A stretch of DNA of 63,605 nucleotides, counting the filler, from Octopus bimaculoides (lineage: Eukaryota): assembly GCF_001194135.2 (NCBI RefSeq). It is 6 parts of 6 records of this genome, joined end to end, with 100 filler letters (N's around TTAATTAATTAA, not from the genome) between each part and the next. Parts side by side here need not be neighbours in the genome. Positions count along the whole stretch, not along the records: positions 19,677 to 27,330 come from NC_068995.1; 5 more parts are not named here. The stretch is one strand, 5' to 3'. The position numbers and the translations under genes are program-made. Position 1 is the stretch's first letter; each line of letters starts with the position of its first letter. Positions 19,677-27,330 of the stretch are shown one piece after another. Below the pieces are notes generated by a model. It was given only the letters and a program-made list of their open reading frames with translations. It was not told the origin of the DNA and did no database searches.

Positions 19677-19722
<46 letters not shown>

Positions 19723-19769
19723 GTATTGCATTTAGTAGGTGGAGATAATAAAATTAGTTGAATACGTAC

Positions 19770-19877
19770 GGTCGTCTGCCGATAATTGTTGACGATATAT
19801 AAAAGGTACATTGAGACGAGGACACCAATGAAAAGGCATATCGCTGCTACGATGCTCAAAATAAGATGATTATCAAT
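19770..19877 (-). CDS. Transmembrane-encoding exon of an unidentified micro-exon gene (108 nt, phase 0-0)
   Basis: Acceptor tttttgtctgttctattttacag and donor ACC|gtacgt. Only one frame is open: IDNHLILSIVAAICLFIGVLVSMYLLYIVNNYRQTT, with a hydrophobic helix of about 25 aa. Confidence 0.8.
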
Positions 19878-20227
19878 CTGTAAAATAGAACAGACAAAAA
19901 ACGATGAAATAACAACTAGAGTTGAATGGTAATGTATAGATAGACTTCTATAGCCTGGACTGTGGATAGCTAAGTACCTTAATGATAAACACCTCATAGC
20001 ATATGATACGACATTGGGACACCAGGTTTAAGGACTGGAGATCGATATTTGCAATGAGAGGTTTTCTGTTACTATTCATTAGTTTGTATAACGCTTCTGA
20101 ATTATCTCCCCTTTCGTGAGAATAATATTGTTCATTAACCGATAATTCCTGCCTCTTCAGGTTTCTATCTCTTTGAATTATATTGATTTCAAAGGTATTG
20201 ATACGCTAACAATAAATAAATAGATAA

Positions 20228-20259
<32 letters not shown>

Positions 20260-20295
20260 GTCTGTCTGTCTGTCTGTCTGTCTGCCTTTCCGTCC

Positions 20296-20347
<52 letters not shown>

Positions 20348-20386
20348 GTCCCTCTATCTATATATCTATCTATCTATCTATCTTAT

Positions 20387-20448
<62 letters not shown>

Positions 20449-20620
20449 GTATGGCTGTCCGTATATCTATGTATCTGTCTGTCTCTCTGTGTGTCTCTCT
20501 GTGTGTCTCTCTGTCTGTCTCTCTGTCTGTCCGTCCATCCGTCTGGCTGTCTGTCTATCTGTATGTCTATCTATCTGTATGTCTGTTTGCCCGTCTATGT
20601 ATGCATGTATGCATGCAAGC
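20228..20620. repeat. (ATCT)n/(GTCT)n compound microsatellite
   Basis: Read directly from the sequence. Confidence 0.95.
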
Positions 20621-20711
20621 AGTCGCCCGTCTATCTCCCTACATCTATGAGAGAAACATCAACATTTATTCTTTGTTATTCGAAAAGTATTAATGGAGAA
20701 TTTATACTTAC

Positions 20712-20723
20712 ACTAACATAAAG
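20712..20723 (-). CDS. 12-nt micro-exon (LYVS)
   Basis: ctattttctcgtttcag|CTTTATGTTAGT|gtaagt. Confidence 0.75.
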
Positions 20724-20768
20724 CTGAAACGAGAAAATAGCAAAGGAAGAATTAATATATTTTCAAAT

Positions 20769-20816
<48 letters not shown>

Positions 20817-21931
20817 TGCATACATACATACACACGTTTGTGCATTTGTGTTTGTATATATATATATATATATATATATATACAAACACAAATATATATA
20901 TATATATATATGTTTATATATATATATATATTTATATATATAATATATATGTTTATATATATATATATATAATATATATGTTTATATATATNNNNNNNNN
21001 NNNNNNNNNNNNNNNNNNNNNNNNNNNNNNNNNNNNNNNNNNNNNNNNNNNNNNNNNNNNNNNNNNNNNNNNNNNNNNNNNNNNNNNNNNNNNNNNNNNN
21101 NNNNNNNNNNNNNNNNNNNNNNNNNNNNNNNNNNNNNNNNNNNNNNNNNNNNNNNNNNNNNNNNNNNNNNNNNNNNNNNNNNNNNNNNNNNNNNNNNNNN
21201 NNNNNNNNNNNNNNNNNNNNNNNNNNNNNNNNNNNNNNNNNNNNNNNNNNNNNNNNNNNNNNNNNNNNNNNNNNNNNNNNNNNNNNNNNNNNNNNNNNNN
21301 NNNNNNNNNNNNNNNNNNNNNNNNNNNNNNNNNNNNNNNNNNNNNNNNNNNNNNNNNNNNNNNNNNNNNNNNNNNNNNNNNNNNNNNNNNNNNNNNNNNN
21401 NNNNNNNNNNNNNNNNNNNNNNNNNNNNNNNNNNNNNNNNNNNNNNNNNNNNNNNNNNNNNNNNNNNNNNNNNNNNNNNNNNNNNNNNNNNNNNNNNNNN
21501 NNNNNNNNNNNNNNNNNNNNNNNNNNNNNNNNNNNNNNNNNNNNNNNNNNNNNNNNNNNNNNNNNNNNNNNNNNNNNNNNNNNNNNNNNNNNNNNNNNNN
21601 NNNNNNNNNNNNNNNNNNNNNNNNNNNNNNNNNNNNNNNNNNNNNNNNNNNNNNNNNNNNNNNNNNNNNNNNNNNNNNNNNNNNNNNNNNNNNNNNNNNN
21701 NNNNNNNNNNNNNNNNNNNNNNNNNNNNNNNNNNNNNNNNNNNNNNNNNNNNNNNNNNNNNNNNNNNNNNNNNNNNNNNNNNNNNNNNNNNNNNNNNNNN
21801 NNNNNNNNNNNNNNNNNNNNNNNNNNNNNNNNNNNNNNNNNNNNNNNNNNNNNNNNNNNNNNNNNNNNNNNNNNNNNNNNNNNNNNNNNNNNNNNNNNNN
21901 NNNNNNNNNNNNNNNAATTGTTTGTACTTAC

Positions 21932-21943
21932 GGCAGCCTTAAC
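21932..21943 (-). CDS. 12-nt micro-exon (VKAA)
   Basis: catatttcaatttcag|GTTAAGGCTGCC|gtaagt. Confidence 0.75.
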
Positions 21944-22069
21944 CTGAAATTGAAATATGTGAAATTAATAATTCAAAGAATCAAAATAATGTTAAAAACG
22001 TTCATTTTTAAAATGTCAACTGGTACAGAACCACAGAGACATTAAATTAACAACATACATACAGATATA

Positions 22070-22262
22070 CTTTTCTACTCTAGGCACAAGGCCTGAAATT
22101 TTGTGGGAGGGGACCAGTCGATTAAATCGATCCCGGTAAGCAACTGGTACTTAATTTATCGACCCCGAAAGGATGAAAGGCAAAGTCAACCTCGGGGAAT
22201 TTGAACTCAGAATGTAAAGACAGACGAAATACCGTTAAGCATTTCGCCAGCTCACCGCCTTA
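22070..22262 (-). mobile_element. SINE family A
   Basis: caactggtacttaatttatcgaccccgaaaggatgaaaggcaaagtcaacctc; sits in a micro-exon intron. Confidence 0.8.
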
Positions 22263-22570
22263 CATACATACAGATGTAGCACATAAAACACACAGGTACA
22301 CACACGCTTACACATACACACTCACACGCACATATATATGCATATATACATCCGCCATATGTGTGTACATATATGTGGGTCTATATGTATGTATGTATGT
22401 ATGTATGTATTCCTTTCTCTTTTACTTGTTTCAGTTATCTGACTGCGGCCAACAGCAACAGCAGCAACAACAGCAACAACAACAACAACAACAACAGCAA
22501 CAACAGCAACAACGTAACAAAGAATACCGACTTTAATTTTCGAGATTATTAACAAAGATTTTATAATTAC

Positions 22571-22582
22571 CTCATCGTTAAC
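22571..22582 (-). CDS. 12-nt micro-exon (VNDE)
   Basis: tttcttgtcatttcag|GTTAACGATGAG|gtaatt. Confidence 0.75.
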
Positions 22583-23722
22583 CTGAAATGACAAGAAATA
22601 AACATATAAATAAGAATAAAATAAGATAAATATATTAAAATAAATTATTTAACAATCAATATATTTGTTTAATATGTTCTCAGTTGTAAATATACACAAA
22701 TGCAGAGCCGCAGAGATACATCGACACACNNNNNNNNNNNNNNNNNNNNNNNNNNNNNNNNNNNNNNNNNNNNNNNNNNNNNNNNNNNNNNNNNNNNNNN
22801 NNNNNNNNNNNNNNNNNNNNNNNNNNNNNNNNNNNNNNNNNNNNNNNNNNNNNNNNNNNNNNNNNNNNNNNNNNNNNNNNNNNNNNNNNNNNNNNNNNNN
22901 NNNNNNNNNNNNNNNNNNNNNNNNNNNNNNNNNNNNNNNNNNNNNNNNNNNNNNNNNNNNNNNNNNNNNNNNNNNNNNNNNNNNNNNNNNNNNNNNNNNN
23001 NNNNNNNNNNNNNNNNNNNNNNNNNNNNNNNNNNNNNNNNNNNNNNNNNNNNNNNNNNNNNNNNNNNNNNNNNNNNNNNNNNNNNNNNNNNNNNNNNNNN
23101 NNNNNNNNNNNNNNNNNNNNNNNNNNNNNNNNNNNNNNNNNNNNNNNNNNNNNNNNNNNNNNNNNNNNNNNNNNNNNNNNNNNNNNNNNNNNNNNNNNNN
23201 NNNNNNNNNNNNNNNNNNNNNNNNNNNNNNNNNNNNNNNNNNNNNNNNNNNNNNNNNNNNNNNNNNNNNNNNNNNNNNNNNNNNNNNNNNNNNNNNNNNN
23301 NNNNNNNNNNNNNNNNNNNNNNNNNNNNNNNNNNNNNNNNNNNNNNNNNNNNNNNNNNNNNNNNNNNNNNNNNNNNNNNNNNNNNNNNNNNNNNATATAT
23401 ATATATATAAAACAGTTTGCATGAAACCGAAAGATTTCTCAATGCTATTTAGTATTCAGCCTGCTCTCCTTCAACAAACGGAAACTTTGAAGACTCATTT
23501 TGTCTTTTACCTATTCAAAGAATTCTATTTCTCCGAATAAGTGAAATAAACGGTCGGTGTAAAGAGAGGTAATTCTCACGAGCTAACAATCTTATTCATT
23601 ACGTACGATTCACGTCTCTTTACATCTATCGCTCGGTCATCCCTTGACACGTATTAATTATTATTACTATTATTATTGATAATTAAGTATTACAGAAATA
23701 TTGGCAAAGAGTTTATACTCAC

Positions 23723-23734
23723 AACATCGTTAAA
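23723..23734 (-). CDS. 12-nt micro-exon (FNDV)
   Basis: ttatttatcatttcag|TTTAACGATGTT|gtgagt. Confidence 0.75.
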
Positions 23735-23924
23735 CTGAAATGATAAATAATGCAATATACATAAAAAAAGAAGAAAGTATTAATTATATACATAAATAAA
23801 ATGAATATATTTTACAATCAATACAATTTTTAATACAAGCAAATACATTCACGCACACAAACATTACACGCGCGCATACACACATACACACGTAGCATAG
23901 TTAAGTATTACATATGGCCTAATT

Positions 23925-24150
23925 ACTAGGATGTTCCAATCGCGATAGCAAGGTCATGATTTCGATTCCCCGGACTGGGCCGCACGTTGTGTTCTTGAGC
24001 AATACTCTTCATTTCACGCTGTTCCCATCTACTCTGCTGCAAATCCCTGACACGGATTGGCATCGCGTCTGGGAAGAGGAATGTTGTTGTGCCTGCGGAG
24101 CCAGCGAGGTGACACCATTCGAAAGCCACAACAACGTGACCAACGTCTGA
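23925..24150 (+). mobile_element. tRNA-head SINE, D-like
   Basis: B box atttcgattcc followed by gttgtgttcttgagcaa.ac.cttcatttcac. Confidence 0.6.
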
Positions 24151-24284
24151 TGGTTGAGGTGATGCACCGATTCACTGCTATTCAAATAGAGACTGTAAAA
24201 TATGCCAGGAATGTTAATAGAAATACATTCTCAGTATAATACCGGTCTGAAACAGTTTTAATATAATGTAATTTCAACCTGTTT

Positions 24285-24482
24285 CAGTTACTTTTACTCG
24301 TTGCGGCCATGCTACAGCACCGCCATGAAGAATTTTTTGTCAAATGATTCGAGACTAGCATTTATTGTTTTTAAAGCTTGGTACTTATTCTATCGGACCC
24401 TTTTGCCGAGCCAGTAGGTTACATAGACGTAAACACACCAACACCGGTTGTCAAGCGGTACGTGGAGGAAACAAACAAAAGT

Positions 24483-24524
<42 letters not shown>

Positions 24525-24668
24525 GACAGACTTCTTTAAGTTTACGTCTACCAAATCGTCTGGCAATGGTTTGGTTGGTCCGAGACTTAGAAGAGACATA
24601 GCCAAAAGTTCCACGGAGTGGGACTGAACCCGGAACCATGTGGTTGGGAAGCTAACATATTACCACAC
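24285..24668 (-). mobile_element. SINE family B
   Basis: Same consensus motifs. Confidence 0.8.
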
Positions 24669-24734
24669 AGACAATATAATATCCATATTATATTTATCAA
24701 TCGAATTTCGATATTCATATTGCTTTCAAGTTCG

Positions 24735-24872
24735 ATGTAAGTCGATTACATCGACCCCAGTACTCAACTGGTCACTGTTTTATCGATAGCGACAGGACGA
24801 AAGGCTAAGTCGGCTCTGCCGGGATTGGAACTCAGAAAGTAATGACGGATGAAATGCTTCTAAGCATTTCAC
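24735..24872 (-). mobile_element. SINE family A, partial
   Basis: aagtcgattacatcgaccccagtactcaactgg. Confidence 0.7.
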
Positions 24873-25029
24873 CTTTTTCGATTTATGGATACGATATAAA
24901 TATGAGATCAATAAGATATAAATATAATGTAATATCAATATAAAGTCAATGTAAACACGGTTACGTGCGTTAGTGAGTCCGAGAATATTGAAGGTGCGGG
25001 ATATTAAAGAGAGGAGTTTGCAGAGACAC

Positions 25030-25200
25030 CCAGATAGATAGGTAGATAGATGGACAGACAGACGGGTAGGTAGGTAGGTAGGTAGGTAGGTAGGTAGGCA
25101 GACAGGCAGGCAGGCAGGTAGGTAGGTAGGTAGGTAGGTAGGCAGACAGGCAGGCAGGCAGGTAGGTAGGTAGGTAGGTAGGTAGGTAGGTAGGTAGGTG
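25030..25200. repeat. Compound tetranucleotide repeat (AGAT)(AGAC)(AGGT)n(AGGC)n
   Basis: Read directly from the sequence. Confidence 0.95.
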
Positions 25201-25388
25201 GGGAAGGAATGGATACCGTGGTTAGTGTGAGGCCGGAGGGAGTTTGGCATAAAAAAGTGTTATGAGTNNNNNNNNNNNNNNNNNNNNNNNNNNNNNNNNN
25301 NNNNNNNNNNNNNNNNNNNNNNNNNNNNNNNNNNNNNNNNNNNNNNNNNNNNNNNNNNNNNNNNNNNNNNNNNNNNNNNNNNNNNNNN

Positions 25389-25439
<51 letters not shown>

Positions 25440-25440
<1 letters not shown>

Positions 25441-26090
25441 GGGGTGGAGAAATAGCATGACTGTGGGTCGGAGGCTGGAAAGTGTGTCTGCTAATGATGG
25501 TGATCTCAGTGAACTTTCTCTGAACGTGATTCTGAATGTTAACGCGTGCAGCAGCAGTAAACTCCCGGATGTAGGGTCGGGGATCCATCGTGGGCCCCAC
25601 CTGAGTCTTGTAGAGGGTCGCAGCTAGATCTTCAGTGATAGTACGACACAGCATTTAGAAGTAACTATCGGGGCTGAAGCTGAGTACCACTCATGTTTAC
25701 TAGGGTGTGTGGTGGGGATGTTTTCTTGATATGAGTGCAACTTGAGATTTTTTTACAGAGATAAGGTTGGCATGGCTTCCCTGGAGGATGGTCCCAAGGT
25801 TTCCATTTATGGAATCAAGGAAGGTTTGGTATGTGGTGCCTAGGTTGTGTGAAGATGTTGCATGGTTCGGGAAAAAGTGAAGGATCGTGTTATCTGCATA
25901 AGAATAGGCATTACTGAGTGTGGTGGTGGCAAGAAAGGGATTGATGTATAAAAGGAAGTGAGAAAGGGAGGAACAGAACCGAACCCTGAGGGAACACCAG
26001 AGTTGATTGAGAGTGGGGAATGAAAGAGCCCCGTCATCACATGCTGTAATAGAGCGATGAAATAGGGAGCTGAGGTCGTGCAGATAACGT
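25440..26090 (-). mobile_element. CR1/L2/Jockey-group LINE RT fragment
   Basis: INSGVP(S)G..V.PFL...YIN....AYSYADNTIL, a degenerate QG/YADD region. Confidence 0.7.
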
Positions 26091-26179
26091 CTAAAACTTA
26101 TCAGCCTCGAACCATTTAAGCTTTTTTCTACTTCATTAAATATCTAAACTTGTGCGTTTATTTGCAATTCTGTTGTTAC

Positions 26180-26415
26180 TTCTAAGTCAGGTCCCTGGTC
26201 GAAAAGAACCTTCTTCCCTGTAAAAAGTGACCGAGCACGCCACAGACACGGGAACCCTTAACGTAGTTCTTGGGGAGATTCAGCATGACACAGAATGTGA
26301 CAAGGCTGTCCCCTTTTGAATTACAGGTACGACTCATTTTCGCTGAGGCAGCAGGTAATTTAGTGTCTTGCTCCAGGAGACAACACGTCGCCTCCGAAAT
26401 CGAACTCACAACCTA
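26180..26415 (-). mobile_element. SINE family D, partial
   Basis: Shares cccttaacgtagttct.ggggagattcagc.tga.acagaatgtgacaaggctg with 59881-60290. Confidence 0.75.
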
Positions 26416-26831
26416 AGCCACATGTTTTCACATAAAATATGGCAGAAGTGAGCAGTCGTTAGGTTTGTAGATGAGTGACTTGCAAAGAATGTGACAATGT
26501 ACAAACAAATTTGCGGTGGATAAATAAAAGGCTTGCGTATTCGTGTTGGAATATGGGAAGTTGGTCAATTTCACTGTATAGACAGATCTGTCTATGGTGT
26601 ATAAGAAGGAGAGTTAGTGCAACGCATTAGGATTGAACCATAAGCAAATGTATTGCTATAAAGAAAGCAGATCAGTTTTAATGTATAAGTAGATCTCTAT
26701 CGCCAGTAAATATAGGAAGGGCAGTTAATCTTGTGCATTGCAATTAAACTGTCGACAATGGTGTCAAGCATAAGCAAGCGGTCAATTATCCATATTTAGA
26801 ATAAAAGATAAAGAATGAGAAAAACACTTAC

Positions 26832-26843
26832 CGTGCCAAAATA
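26832..26843 (-). CDS. 12-nt micro-exon (YFGT)
   Basis: aattattatatttcag|TATTTTGGCACG|gtaagt. Confidence 0.7.
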
Positions 26844-27099
26844 CTGAAATATAATAATTAAGAGATTGTAGTATGTATGTGTTTGTATATATATATATAT
26901 ATTCAATCGATCAATGATAATATTACATCAATTTGAAATGAACTGCTCTCCTCAAATGCAGACGACCTGGACGATTAAATGGAGCCGCTTGAAACGGCCG
27001 CAATGCACTGATACCTGGATATCCTCGTTACTAATTTGCTTTTTACTCACCTAACTTCGAGCTACGTGGACTATACCGAACTGGCTTGGTGTCTTAATA

Positions 27100-27305
27100 T
27101 AAGTACCTAATCCAACTGAATGAAGTCTTTTGACATGTCGTTTTAATCCCCCAGCTGAACGGTAAACCATTCCACAGGTTGCACGCGTTCTGTAGTCAAC
27201 AATAGCTGTATCATAATTTACAAGGGGTCGATTCCCACGACTACTTTGACGGACAGCCAGGCCTGCATGACTTAAGCATTTCCTCTTACAAATCACACAC
27301 GTAAA
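27100..27305 (-). mobile_element. Two degenerate C2H2-like fingers, probably an RTE C-terminal remnant
   Basis: FTCVICKRKCLSHAGL... and TCGMVYRSAGGLKRHVKRLH. The RTE assignment is an inference. Confidence 0.45.
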
Positions 27306-27330
27306 ATTCAATACTCCTTCATATATATAT

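Follow-up and report, generated by a model that had tools for sequence, protein, structure and literature searches.

Micro-exon genes (MEGs) of the flatworms Schistosoma, Echinococcus and Hymenolepis contain runs of very short exons divisible by three, which are separated by introns of 0.1-5 kb and whose skipping alters only a few residues; these exons measure 6-81 nt, mostly 15 (PMC4350168; bioRxiv 10.1101/2023.06.21.545858; PMC7653826). Such genes evolve fast (PMC4350168), have been described as specific to Schistosomatidae (bioRxiv 10.1101/2023.06.21.545858) and are hard for gene finders to annotate (PMC7653826). Micro-exons of 15 nt or less are also often missed (PMC8831610). In the operational definition of Olson et al. 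2020 (PMC7653826), a MEG has micro-exons measuring less than 70 nt and a multiple of three, a run of four or more of these, and seven or more exons in all, no fewer than half of them micro-exons. Outside the flatworms, exons 4-8 of TNNT3 form a set of five consecutive small alternatively spliced exons (PMC2447309). The present analysis concerns a locus of the octopus Octopus bimaculoides that may share this kind of design. The window (the whole stretch of DNA analysed, 63,605 nt including filler) is composed of several parts of the genome, and the locus occupies the part derived from NC_068995.1 (positions 19677-27330, hereafter the piece), with the minus strand as the gene strand. In this piece, five predicted micro-exons of 12 nt each (me1 to me5) precede a predicted exon of 108 nt that would encode a membrane anchor. 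The literature searches found no cephalopod micro-exon gene or micro-exon array, in agreement with an earlier sequence-only reading of the same DNA, which had proposed the locus as a MEG-like system and knew of no such locus in cephalopods.

The sequence-only reading had reported five minus-strand sites in which TTTCAG, 12 nt and GT(A/G)A(G/T)T follow one another. Exactly five such sites are present, with the positions and sequences it gave (Table 1), and they represent 5/7 of the minus-strand TTTCAG motifs of the piece, which bears out the claim that they form the majority. When TTTCAG-to-GTRAKT spacings of 0-60 nt were scanned, the minus strand gave matches at 12 nt only, and the plus strand gave none at any spacing. 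To estimate chance expectation, the four stretches of known sequence in the piece (27330-25389, 25267-23395, 22729-21916 and 20991-19677) were shuffled 5000 times with dinucleotides preserved. TTTCAG-N12-GTRAKT appeared in the shuffles 0.0022 times on average and never more than once, against five observed; the relaxed pattern YAG-N12-GTRAKT had a shuffle mean of 0.23, again against five observed. A chance origin of the sites is ruled out by these shuffles together with the single spacing and the single strand. Searches for exons of other lengths, with weaker signals or in decayed form revealed no further micro-exon in the sequenced parts, and no other candidate exon lies among the five there. 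Each proposed exon, along with both its splice signals, is contained in a single contiguous stretch. Moreover, all three assembly gaps fall within predicted introns, and therefore the reading frame does not require continuity across them.

Table 1. Features of the predicted octopus locus. Positions count along the window; a slash marks a predicted exon boundary.
Feature	Position	Strand	Sequence and signals	Remarks
me1 (predicted)	26843-26832	minus	12 nt TATTTTGGCACG, YFGT; acceptor TTTCAG/; donor /GTAAGTGT	
me2 (predicted)	23734-23723	minus	12 nt TTTAACGATGTT, FNDV; donor /GTGAGTAT	TGC at -20
me3 (predicted)	22582-22571	minus	12 nt GTTAACGATGAG, VNDE; donor GAG/GTAATTAT	
me4 (predicted)	21943-21932	minus	12 nt GTTAAGGCTGCC, VKAA; donor /GTAAGTAC	
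me5 (predicted)	20723-20712	minus	12 nt CTTTATGTTAGT, LYVS; donor /GTAAGTAT	TGC at -19
108-nt phase-0 exon (predicted)	19877..19770	minus	acceptor ttctattttacag/; donor /GTACGTAT; peptide IDNHLILSIVAAICLFIGVLVSMYLLYIVNNYRQTT	
Predicted me2/me3 junction			TTTAACGATGTT/GTTAACGATGAG	
Predicted me4/me5 junction			GTTAAGGCTGCC/CTTTATGTTAGT	
Predicted junction of me5 with 108-nt exon			CTTTATGTTAGT/ATTGATAATCAT	
me2 unit	23681..23840	minus		exon with flanks of about 100 nt (upstream) and 40 nt (downstream); nhmmer E=6.5e-28; repeat families D6, D7
me3 unit	22527..22690	minus		pairwise alignment, nhmmer, repeat families
me4 unit	21920..22048	minus		3' part lost in gap; pairwise alignment, nhmmer, repeat families
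me5 unit	20669..20832	minus		pairwise alignment, nhmmer, repeat families
Assembly gap	25268..25388			predicted me1-me2 intron; adjoins dinucleotide repeat, (GA)n on plus, (CT)n on minus strand
Assembly gap	22730..23394			665 nt; predicted me2-me3 intron; (AT)n at one side
Assembly gap	20992..21915			924 nt; predicted me4-me5 intron; (AT)n at one side

Four of the five micro-exons, me2 to me5, are copies, made by tandem duplication, of a single unit of about 160 nt that comprises the exon and its flanks. The clearest pair is me2 and me3, with approximately 75% identity over about 139 columns of a pairwise local alignment. Their similarity extends over roughly 100 nt on the upstream side of the exon and 25 nt on the downstream side, and the indels are found in the flanks and not in the exon. 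Weaker relatedness was obtained by the same method for the me3/me5, me2/me5 and me3/me4 pairs. A repeat-family analysis gathered the same four units into one family (D7), with spacings of 1220, 639 and 1152 nt, and an nhmmer profile built from me2-me5 recovered these four units only, with E values from 1e-22 to 1e-31; neither method makes use of the splice motif. Similarity searches of the sequenced DNA detected no decayed copies of the unit. The micro-exon me1 has the splice architecture in common with me2-me5 but not the flanks, and it was not detected by their profile; taken as an independent match to the pattern set by the other four, it has a chance probability of about 0.002. The exon changes between paralogues are mostly amino-acid-changing, and this divergence is compatible with a low-constraint linker as well as with diversification.

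The splice signals of the duplicated units have changed much less than their surroundings. In ungapped register, 10/12 signal columns are invariant among the four paralogues (acceptor 6/6, donor 4/6), compared with 10/44 columns in the flanks (Fisher p=2e-4), and the exon is 12 nt long in every copy despite the flank indels. The donors extend their match toward the full U1-complementary consensus GTAAGTAT. The only donor without G at +5 is that of me3, which is also the only exon ending in AG, and AG at the exon end is a familiar compensation for an absent +5 G. The AG-exclusion zones upstream of the acceptors measure 97, 182, 94, 74 and 45 nt for me1 to me5, respectively, and 36 nt for the 108-nt exon. 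Among all 322 AG dinucleotides of the minus strand the median zone is 6 nt and the 90th percentile 37 nt, which places the five micro-exons between the 92nd and the 99.7th percentile. The cis-code of regulated micro-exons in Drosophila comprises long AG-exclusion zones and UGC near the 3' splice site (PMC8797185). Here, TGC stands near the acceptor only in me2 and me5, and 3/5 micro-exons are without it. The tandem duplication of four micro-exons, the preservation of their signals and length, and the unusual length of all five AG-exclusion zones are new with respect to the sequence-only reading. The interpretation of the sites as exon-like units under constraint, and not chance motifs, is supported by the sequence evidence.

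A further element was noticed just after the donor. The string GTRAKTATAAAnTCT...TAATA is common to me2, me3 and me5 (23712-23722, 22560-22570 and 20701-20711), and this element, which can be written GTAAGTATAAA-TCT, is conserved above the level of the upstream flank. As a candidate intronic splicing enhancer, it may assist the recognition of a 12-nt exon. On the donor side of me4, only 16 nt of flank precede the gap.

The next good acceptor downstream of the micro-exons is that of the 108-nt exon. The peptide which the sequence-only reading had assigned to this exon was correct, frame 0 being its sole open frame, and its claim that all five micro-exons are stop-free in phase 0 also held, in the same frame as the 108-nt exon. 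Frame 2 meets TAA in me2-me4 and frame 1 closes within the 108-nt exon; therefore, the joined frame of the concatenated exons is unique. Since each micro-exon is symmetric (12 nt, phase 0), any subset of them preserves this frame. The segment LILSIVAAICLFIGVLVSMYL of the encoded peptide has a mean Kyte-Doolittle hydropathy of 2.72, and it is the only non-microsatellite 21-residue window reaching 2.72 in the six frames of the piece. The 108-nt exon is thus predicted to encode a single transmembrane helix. The donor GTACGTAT of this exon points to more exons past the edge of the piece, and both ends of the gene lie beyond it. With R as the sole basic residue that follows the helix and with acidic modules before it, our guess would be that the N-terminus is outside.

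Two neighbouring open reading frames (ORFs) touch on the question of the preceding exon. The frame of the 108-nt exon, extended over 19878-19997 on the minus strand, reaches an ATG at 19997 (MRCLSLRYLAIHSPG...), from which a candidate alternative first exon could start. The minus-strand ORF 27311-27051 was tested, and discarded, as a coding exon that might precede the array: its frame runs into TAG right before its only good donor, GTGAGT (27050), and therefore it cannot feed a phase-0 exon, while its other donor-like site would give phase 1.

Taken together, these results favour, with some reserve, an unannotated minus-strand gene in which duplicated 12-nt modules precede a membrane anchor. 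Such a gene would include an uninterrupted series of five or more 12-nt micro-exons in phase 0, each adding four residues just N-terminal to the transmembrane helix. One exon-plus-flank unit was serially duplicated in tandem to give me2-me5, after which the splice signals and the 12-nt length were retained, and the intron flanks and the encoded residues diverged. Retention of signals and length beside diverged flanks implies that each copy is used as an exon now or was so recently, and we regard it as likely that the units are real exons. The symmetry of the modules, the introns of at least 0.6 kb and the lack of anything enforcing a one-of-N choice would make independent inclusion or skipping the most likely mode of use. 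In this mode the juxtamembrane stalk would vary in steps of four residues, that is, of approximately one helical turn. Combinatorial skipping itself is a tenable proposal, held with less than even confidence. The sequence itself shows the motifs, the paralogy, the selective conservation, the compatible frames and the hydrophobic exon; that the array is transcribed, joined to the membrane exon and alternatively included is what we infer, and the 32 combinations mentioned in the sequence-only reading are a matter of arithmetic only. From its proposal of a modular membrane protein, the constrained exon-like units, the symmetric four-codon modules and the frame fit with the transmembrane exon stand. 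The description as real, symmetric, duplicated coding micro-exons is, for a prediction from genomic DNA, well supported.

Several points weigh against this gene model. The spliced 56-residue peptide had no word-sharing candidate among 5.8 billion proteins, the 36-residue exon gave 0 matches at E<=0.001 among 1.84 billion cluster representatives, and a degenerate DNA pattern for the helix gave 0 matches in metagenome contigs. The neighbouring zinc-finger-like ORF of 86 residues had no protein match either, and therefore the negative protein searches carry limited weight. A run of 20 stop-free codons is weak evidence, with an estimated chance of about 0.26 at this composition, and T-rich sequence readily yields hydrophobic peptides. 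As the frame of the 108-nt exon stays open for another 40 codons upstream of the acceptor, the boundary of this exon is a prediction and not a proven one. Within the piece there is neither a start codon nor a signal peptide, nor a coding exon farther upstream that would be compatible. How the four sequenced stretches are ordered and oriented depends on scaffolding; all units share one orientation. Finally, part of the invariance of the splice signals was bound to be found, since it was the splice motif that first drew attention to the sites. The failure of similarity searches to find decayed copies lessens this worry, which is nevertheless still present. Apart from these points, Pfam returned sub-threshold noise only (DUF4064, E=0.014), and scans with Rfam and for tRNAs gave nothing.

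The strongest of the other explanations accepts the exons and denies their diversifying role. All five 12-nt exons might always be included, forming an internally duplicated linker. No sequence feature demands skipping, and the strong sites (GTAAGT-type donors, polypyrimidine tracts, long AG-free zones) would equally suit efficient constitutive recognition. On the other hand, long AG-exclusion zones and TGC, the latter seen in me2 and me5, have been reported for regulated micro-exons (PMC8797185), and the known runs of symmetric mini-exons, in TNNT3 exons 4-8 (PMC2447309) and in MEGs (PMC4350168), are alternatively spliced. Constitutive inclusion is therefore considered unlikely, yet it deserves more attention than any of the explanations that follow.

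It could also be argued that the sites are relics, namely a duplicated micro-exon segment of which most or all copies are no longer spliced; if none is spliced, the frame of the 108-nt exon would be fortuitous. The peptide, exon and helix-pattern searches without a homologue agree with this, as do the mostly amino-acid-changing differences between paralogues and the exon interiors, which are conserved no more than the downstream flank (5/12 and 5/10 invariant columns, respectively). However, the flanks are only about 50-75% identical, and neutral decay to this extent would be expected to destroy at least some of the eight splice signals or to alter a length; instead, 10/12 signal columns show no change, every one of the four exons is 12 nt long and no decayed copy occurs in the sequenced part. 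The same architecture in me1, which is no flank paralogue of the others, speaks against decay as well (p of about 0.002 by chance). The proposal of relic pseudo-exons thus appears improbable.

Marginally less probable still is mutually exclusive use, in which each transcript would contain one of the paralogous micro-exons, as is common among tandemly duplicated exons, to yield 4-5 isoforms, all equally long and distinguished by a single four-residue module. The units me2-me5 are equal-length tandem duplicates with similar flanks, and tandem duplicates of equal length are the typical origin of mutually exclusive exon clusters. Nevertheless, the exon length is a multiple of 3, so that double inclusion stays in frame, and the introns of at least about 600 nt impose no steric block. 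A docking/selector scan for a common site that could pair with the conserved flanks yielded nothing beyond trivial matches of purine microsatellites to pyrimidine tracts. That the motif is simply carried by a dispersed or satellite repeat or a transposable-element fragment bearing TTTCAG-N12-GTAAGT, unrelated to any gene, is very improbable: the piece is rich in repeats and microsatellites and the units have about 160 nt of AT-rich similarity in common, but the copies are co-oriented and stand in series before a frame-compatible exon, conservation peaks exactly at the splice signals and not in the interior, and me1 has the signals alone in common with the rest.

The predicted array of modules before a membrane anchor may be longer than it appears. 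The me2-me3 interval (1152 nt, with a 665-nt gap) and the me4-me5 interval (1220 nt, with a 924-nt gap) compare with 639 nt between me3 and me4, and each of these two gaps is large enough that it could conceal one further unit. The gaps may add exons to the run and cannot subtract any. Microsatellites adjoin each of the three gaps, and they are the usual cause of breaks in short-read assemblies.

Repeats are also present elsewhere in the piece, which begins at 27330 with (AT)n. A (CAA/CAG)n repeat at 22450-22531, (GTT/GCT)n on the gene strand, starts about 40 nt past me3; should the me3 donor go unused, read-through would encode a long hydrophobic run rich in valine and alanine (ORF 22594-22322). 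Compound tetranucleotide microsatellites occupy 20228-20640 (GATA/GACA-type) and 25008-25222 (CCTA/CCTG-type) on the gene strand, and they are mutually complementary over about 120 nt at 72-79%. Their pairing across approximately 4.7 kb of pre-mRNA could loop out me2-me5, or it may be a trivial effect of simple repeats. The predicted introns contain short interspersed repeats with a tRNA-derived look (22196-22248 and 24821-24873, 79% identical), and similar-looking stretches are found near 24560-24670 and 26230-26430. No tRNA was called in these repeats by ARAGORN or Rfam, and they may resemble the short interspersed nuclear elements that are abundant in octopus genomes. The minus-strand ORF at 27051-27311 encodes two degenerate C2H2 zinc-finger-like motifs (Pfam zf-C2H2, E of about 0.002, below the cut-off) and may be a decayed fragment of a transposable element or of a zinc-finger gene.

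Among the known systems, the flatworm MEGs are closest in architecture to the octopus locus, with its run of five 12-nt exons at spacings of 0.6-3.1 kb. By their predicted splice signals, all five exons are below the 70-nt limit of Olson et al. and divisible by three, and they stand in series as a run longer than the minimum of four; the exons visible in the piece number six (five micro-exons and the 108-nt exon), with both gene ends outside. The exons here are uniformly 12 nt long and four of them are evident tandem duplicates, whereas MEG exons vary in length. Schistosome MEGs are further marked by an N-terminal signal peptide and a secreted or surface product; here the 5' end of the gene lies beyond the piece, which offers only the predicted transmembrane helix. 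A family relationship was not found, as neither the 56-residue peptide nor the 36-residue exon had a match in searches whose short queries give low power. The earlier claim of a MEG-like system is therefore kept for the architecture, which fits the description, and not for the protein, which has no similarity to schistosome MEGs, so that the locus may be said to work like a MEG and not to be a member of the family. TNNT3 is the classic vertebrate case, and it resembles the locus in its consecutive small exons, any combination of which is frame-neutral. Its mini-exons were reportedly found by Breitbart and co-workers in 1985 to be compatible in frame, with 2^5 = 32 patterns. In contrast to the predicted octopus protein, the TNNT3 product is a soluble muscle protein without a transmembrane exon, and its mini-exons, which vary in length, code for an acidic tail at the N-terminus; the protein searches with the peptide and the exon found no troponin T homology. 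Neuronal micro-exons dependent on eMIC (Srrm234/SRRM4) are comparable in size (27 nt or less), in the long AG-exclusion zones of all five exons and in the UGC near the 3' splice site of 2/5, but the other 3/5 are without UGC. Moreover, eMIC-dependent micro-exons are typically single exons in conserved genes and not tandem arrays. The mutually exclusive clusters of Dscam1, Mhc and 14-3-3zeta consist, like me2-me5, of adjacent paralogous exons of equal length that arose by tandem duplication. In the octopus units nothing enforces exclusivity, the length being divisible by 3, the introns long and no docking or selector pairing having emerged from the scan, and the exons are about ten times shorter than in those clusters.

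What distinguishes this locus among these systems is the uniform 12-nt length together with the evident origin by tandem duplication. The uniform step of four residues, close to one helical turn, suggests that the array may set the length and register of the juxtamembrane segment. If transcripts confirm the prediction, the locus would clearly exemplify a micro-exon array to which the serial duplication of a 12-nt exon gave rise. It would also show how modular, frame-neutral protein diversification arises outside parasitic flatworms, and it would represent a concrete coding sequence invisible to standard annotation. A bolder proposition, which we hold only tentatively and consider rather unlikely as it stands, is that MEG-type diversification evolved independently in a gene outside the flatworms, possibly a lineage-specific one, with 32 or more isoforms, a stalk tuned in length and sequence by combinatorial splicing, possibly more modules in the gaps, and perhaps regulation through long AG-free zones such as typify neuronal micro-exon programmes. 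Summarizing, the octopus locus is a promising in-silico prediction of a modular cassette array, which may be likened to the MEGs of flatworms in the design of its run of micro-exons and to TNNT3 in the frame neutrality of its modules.

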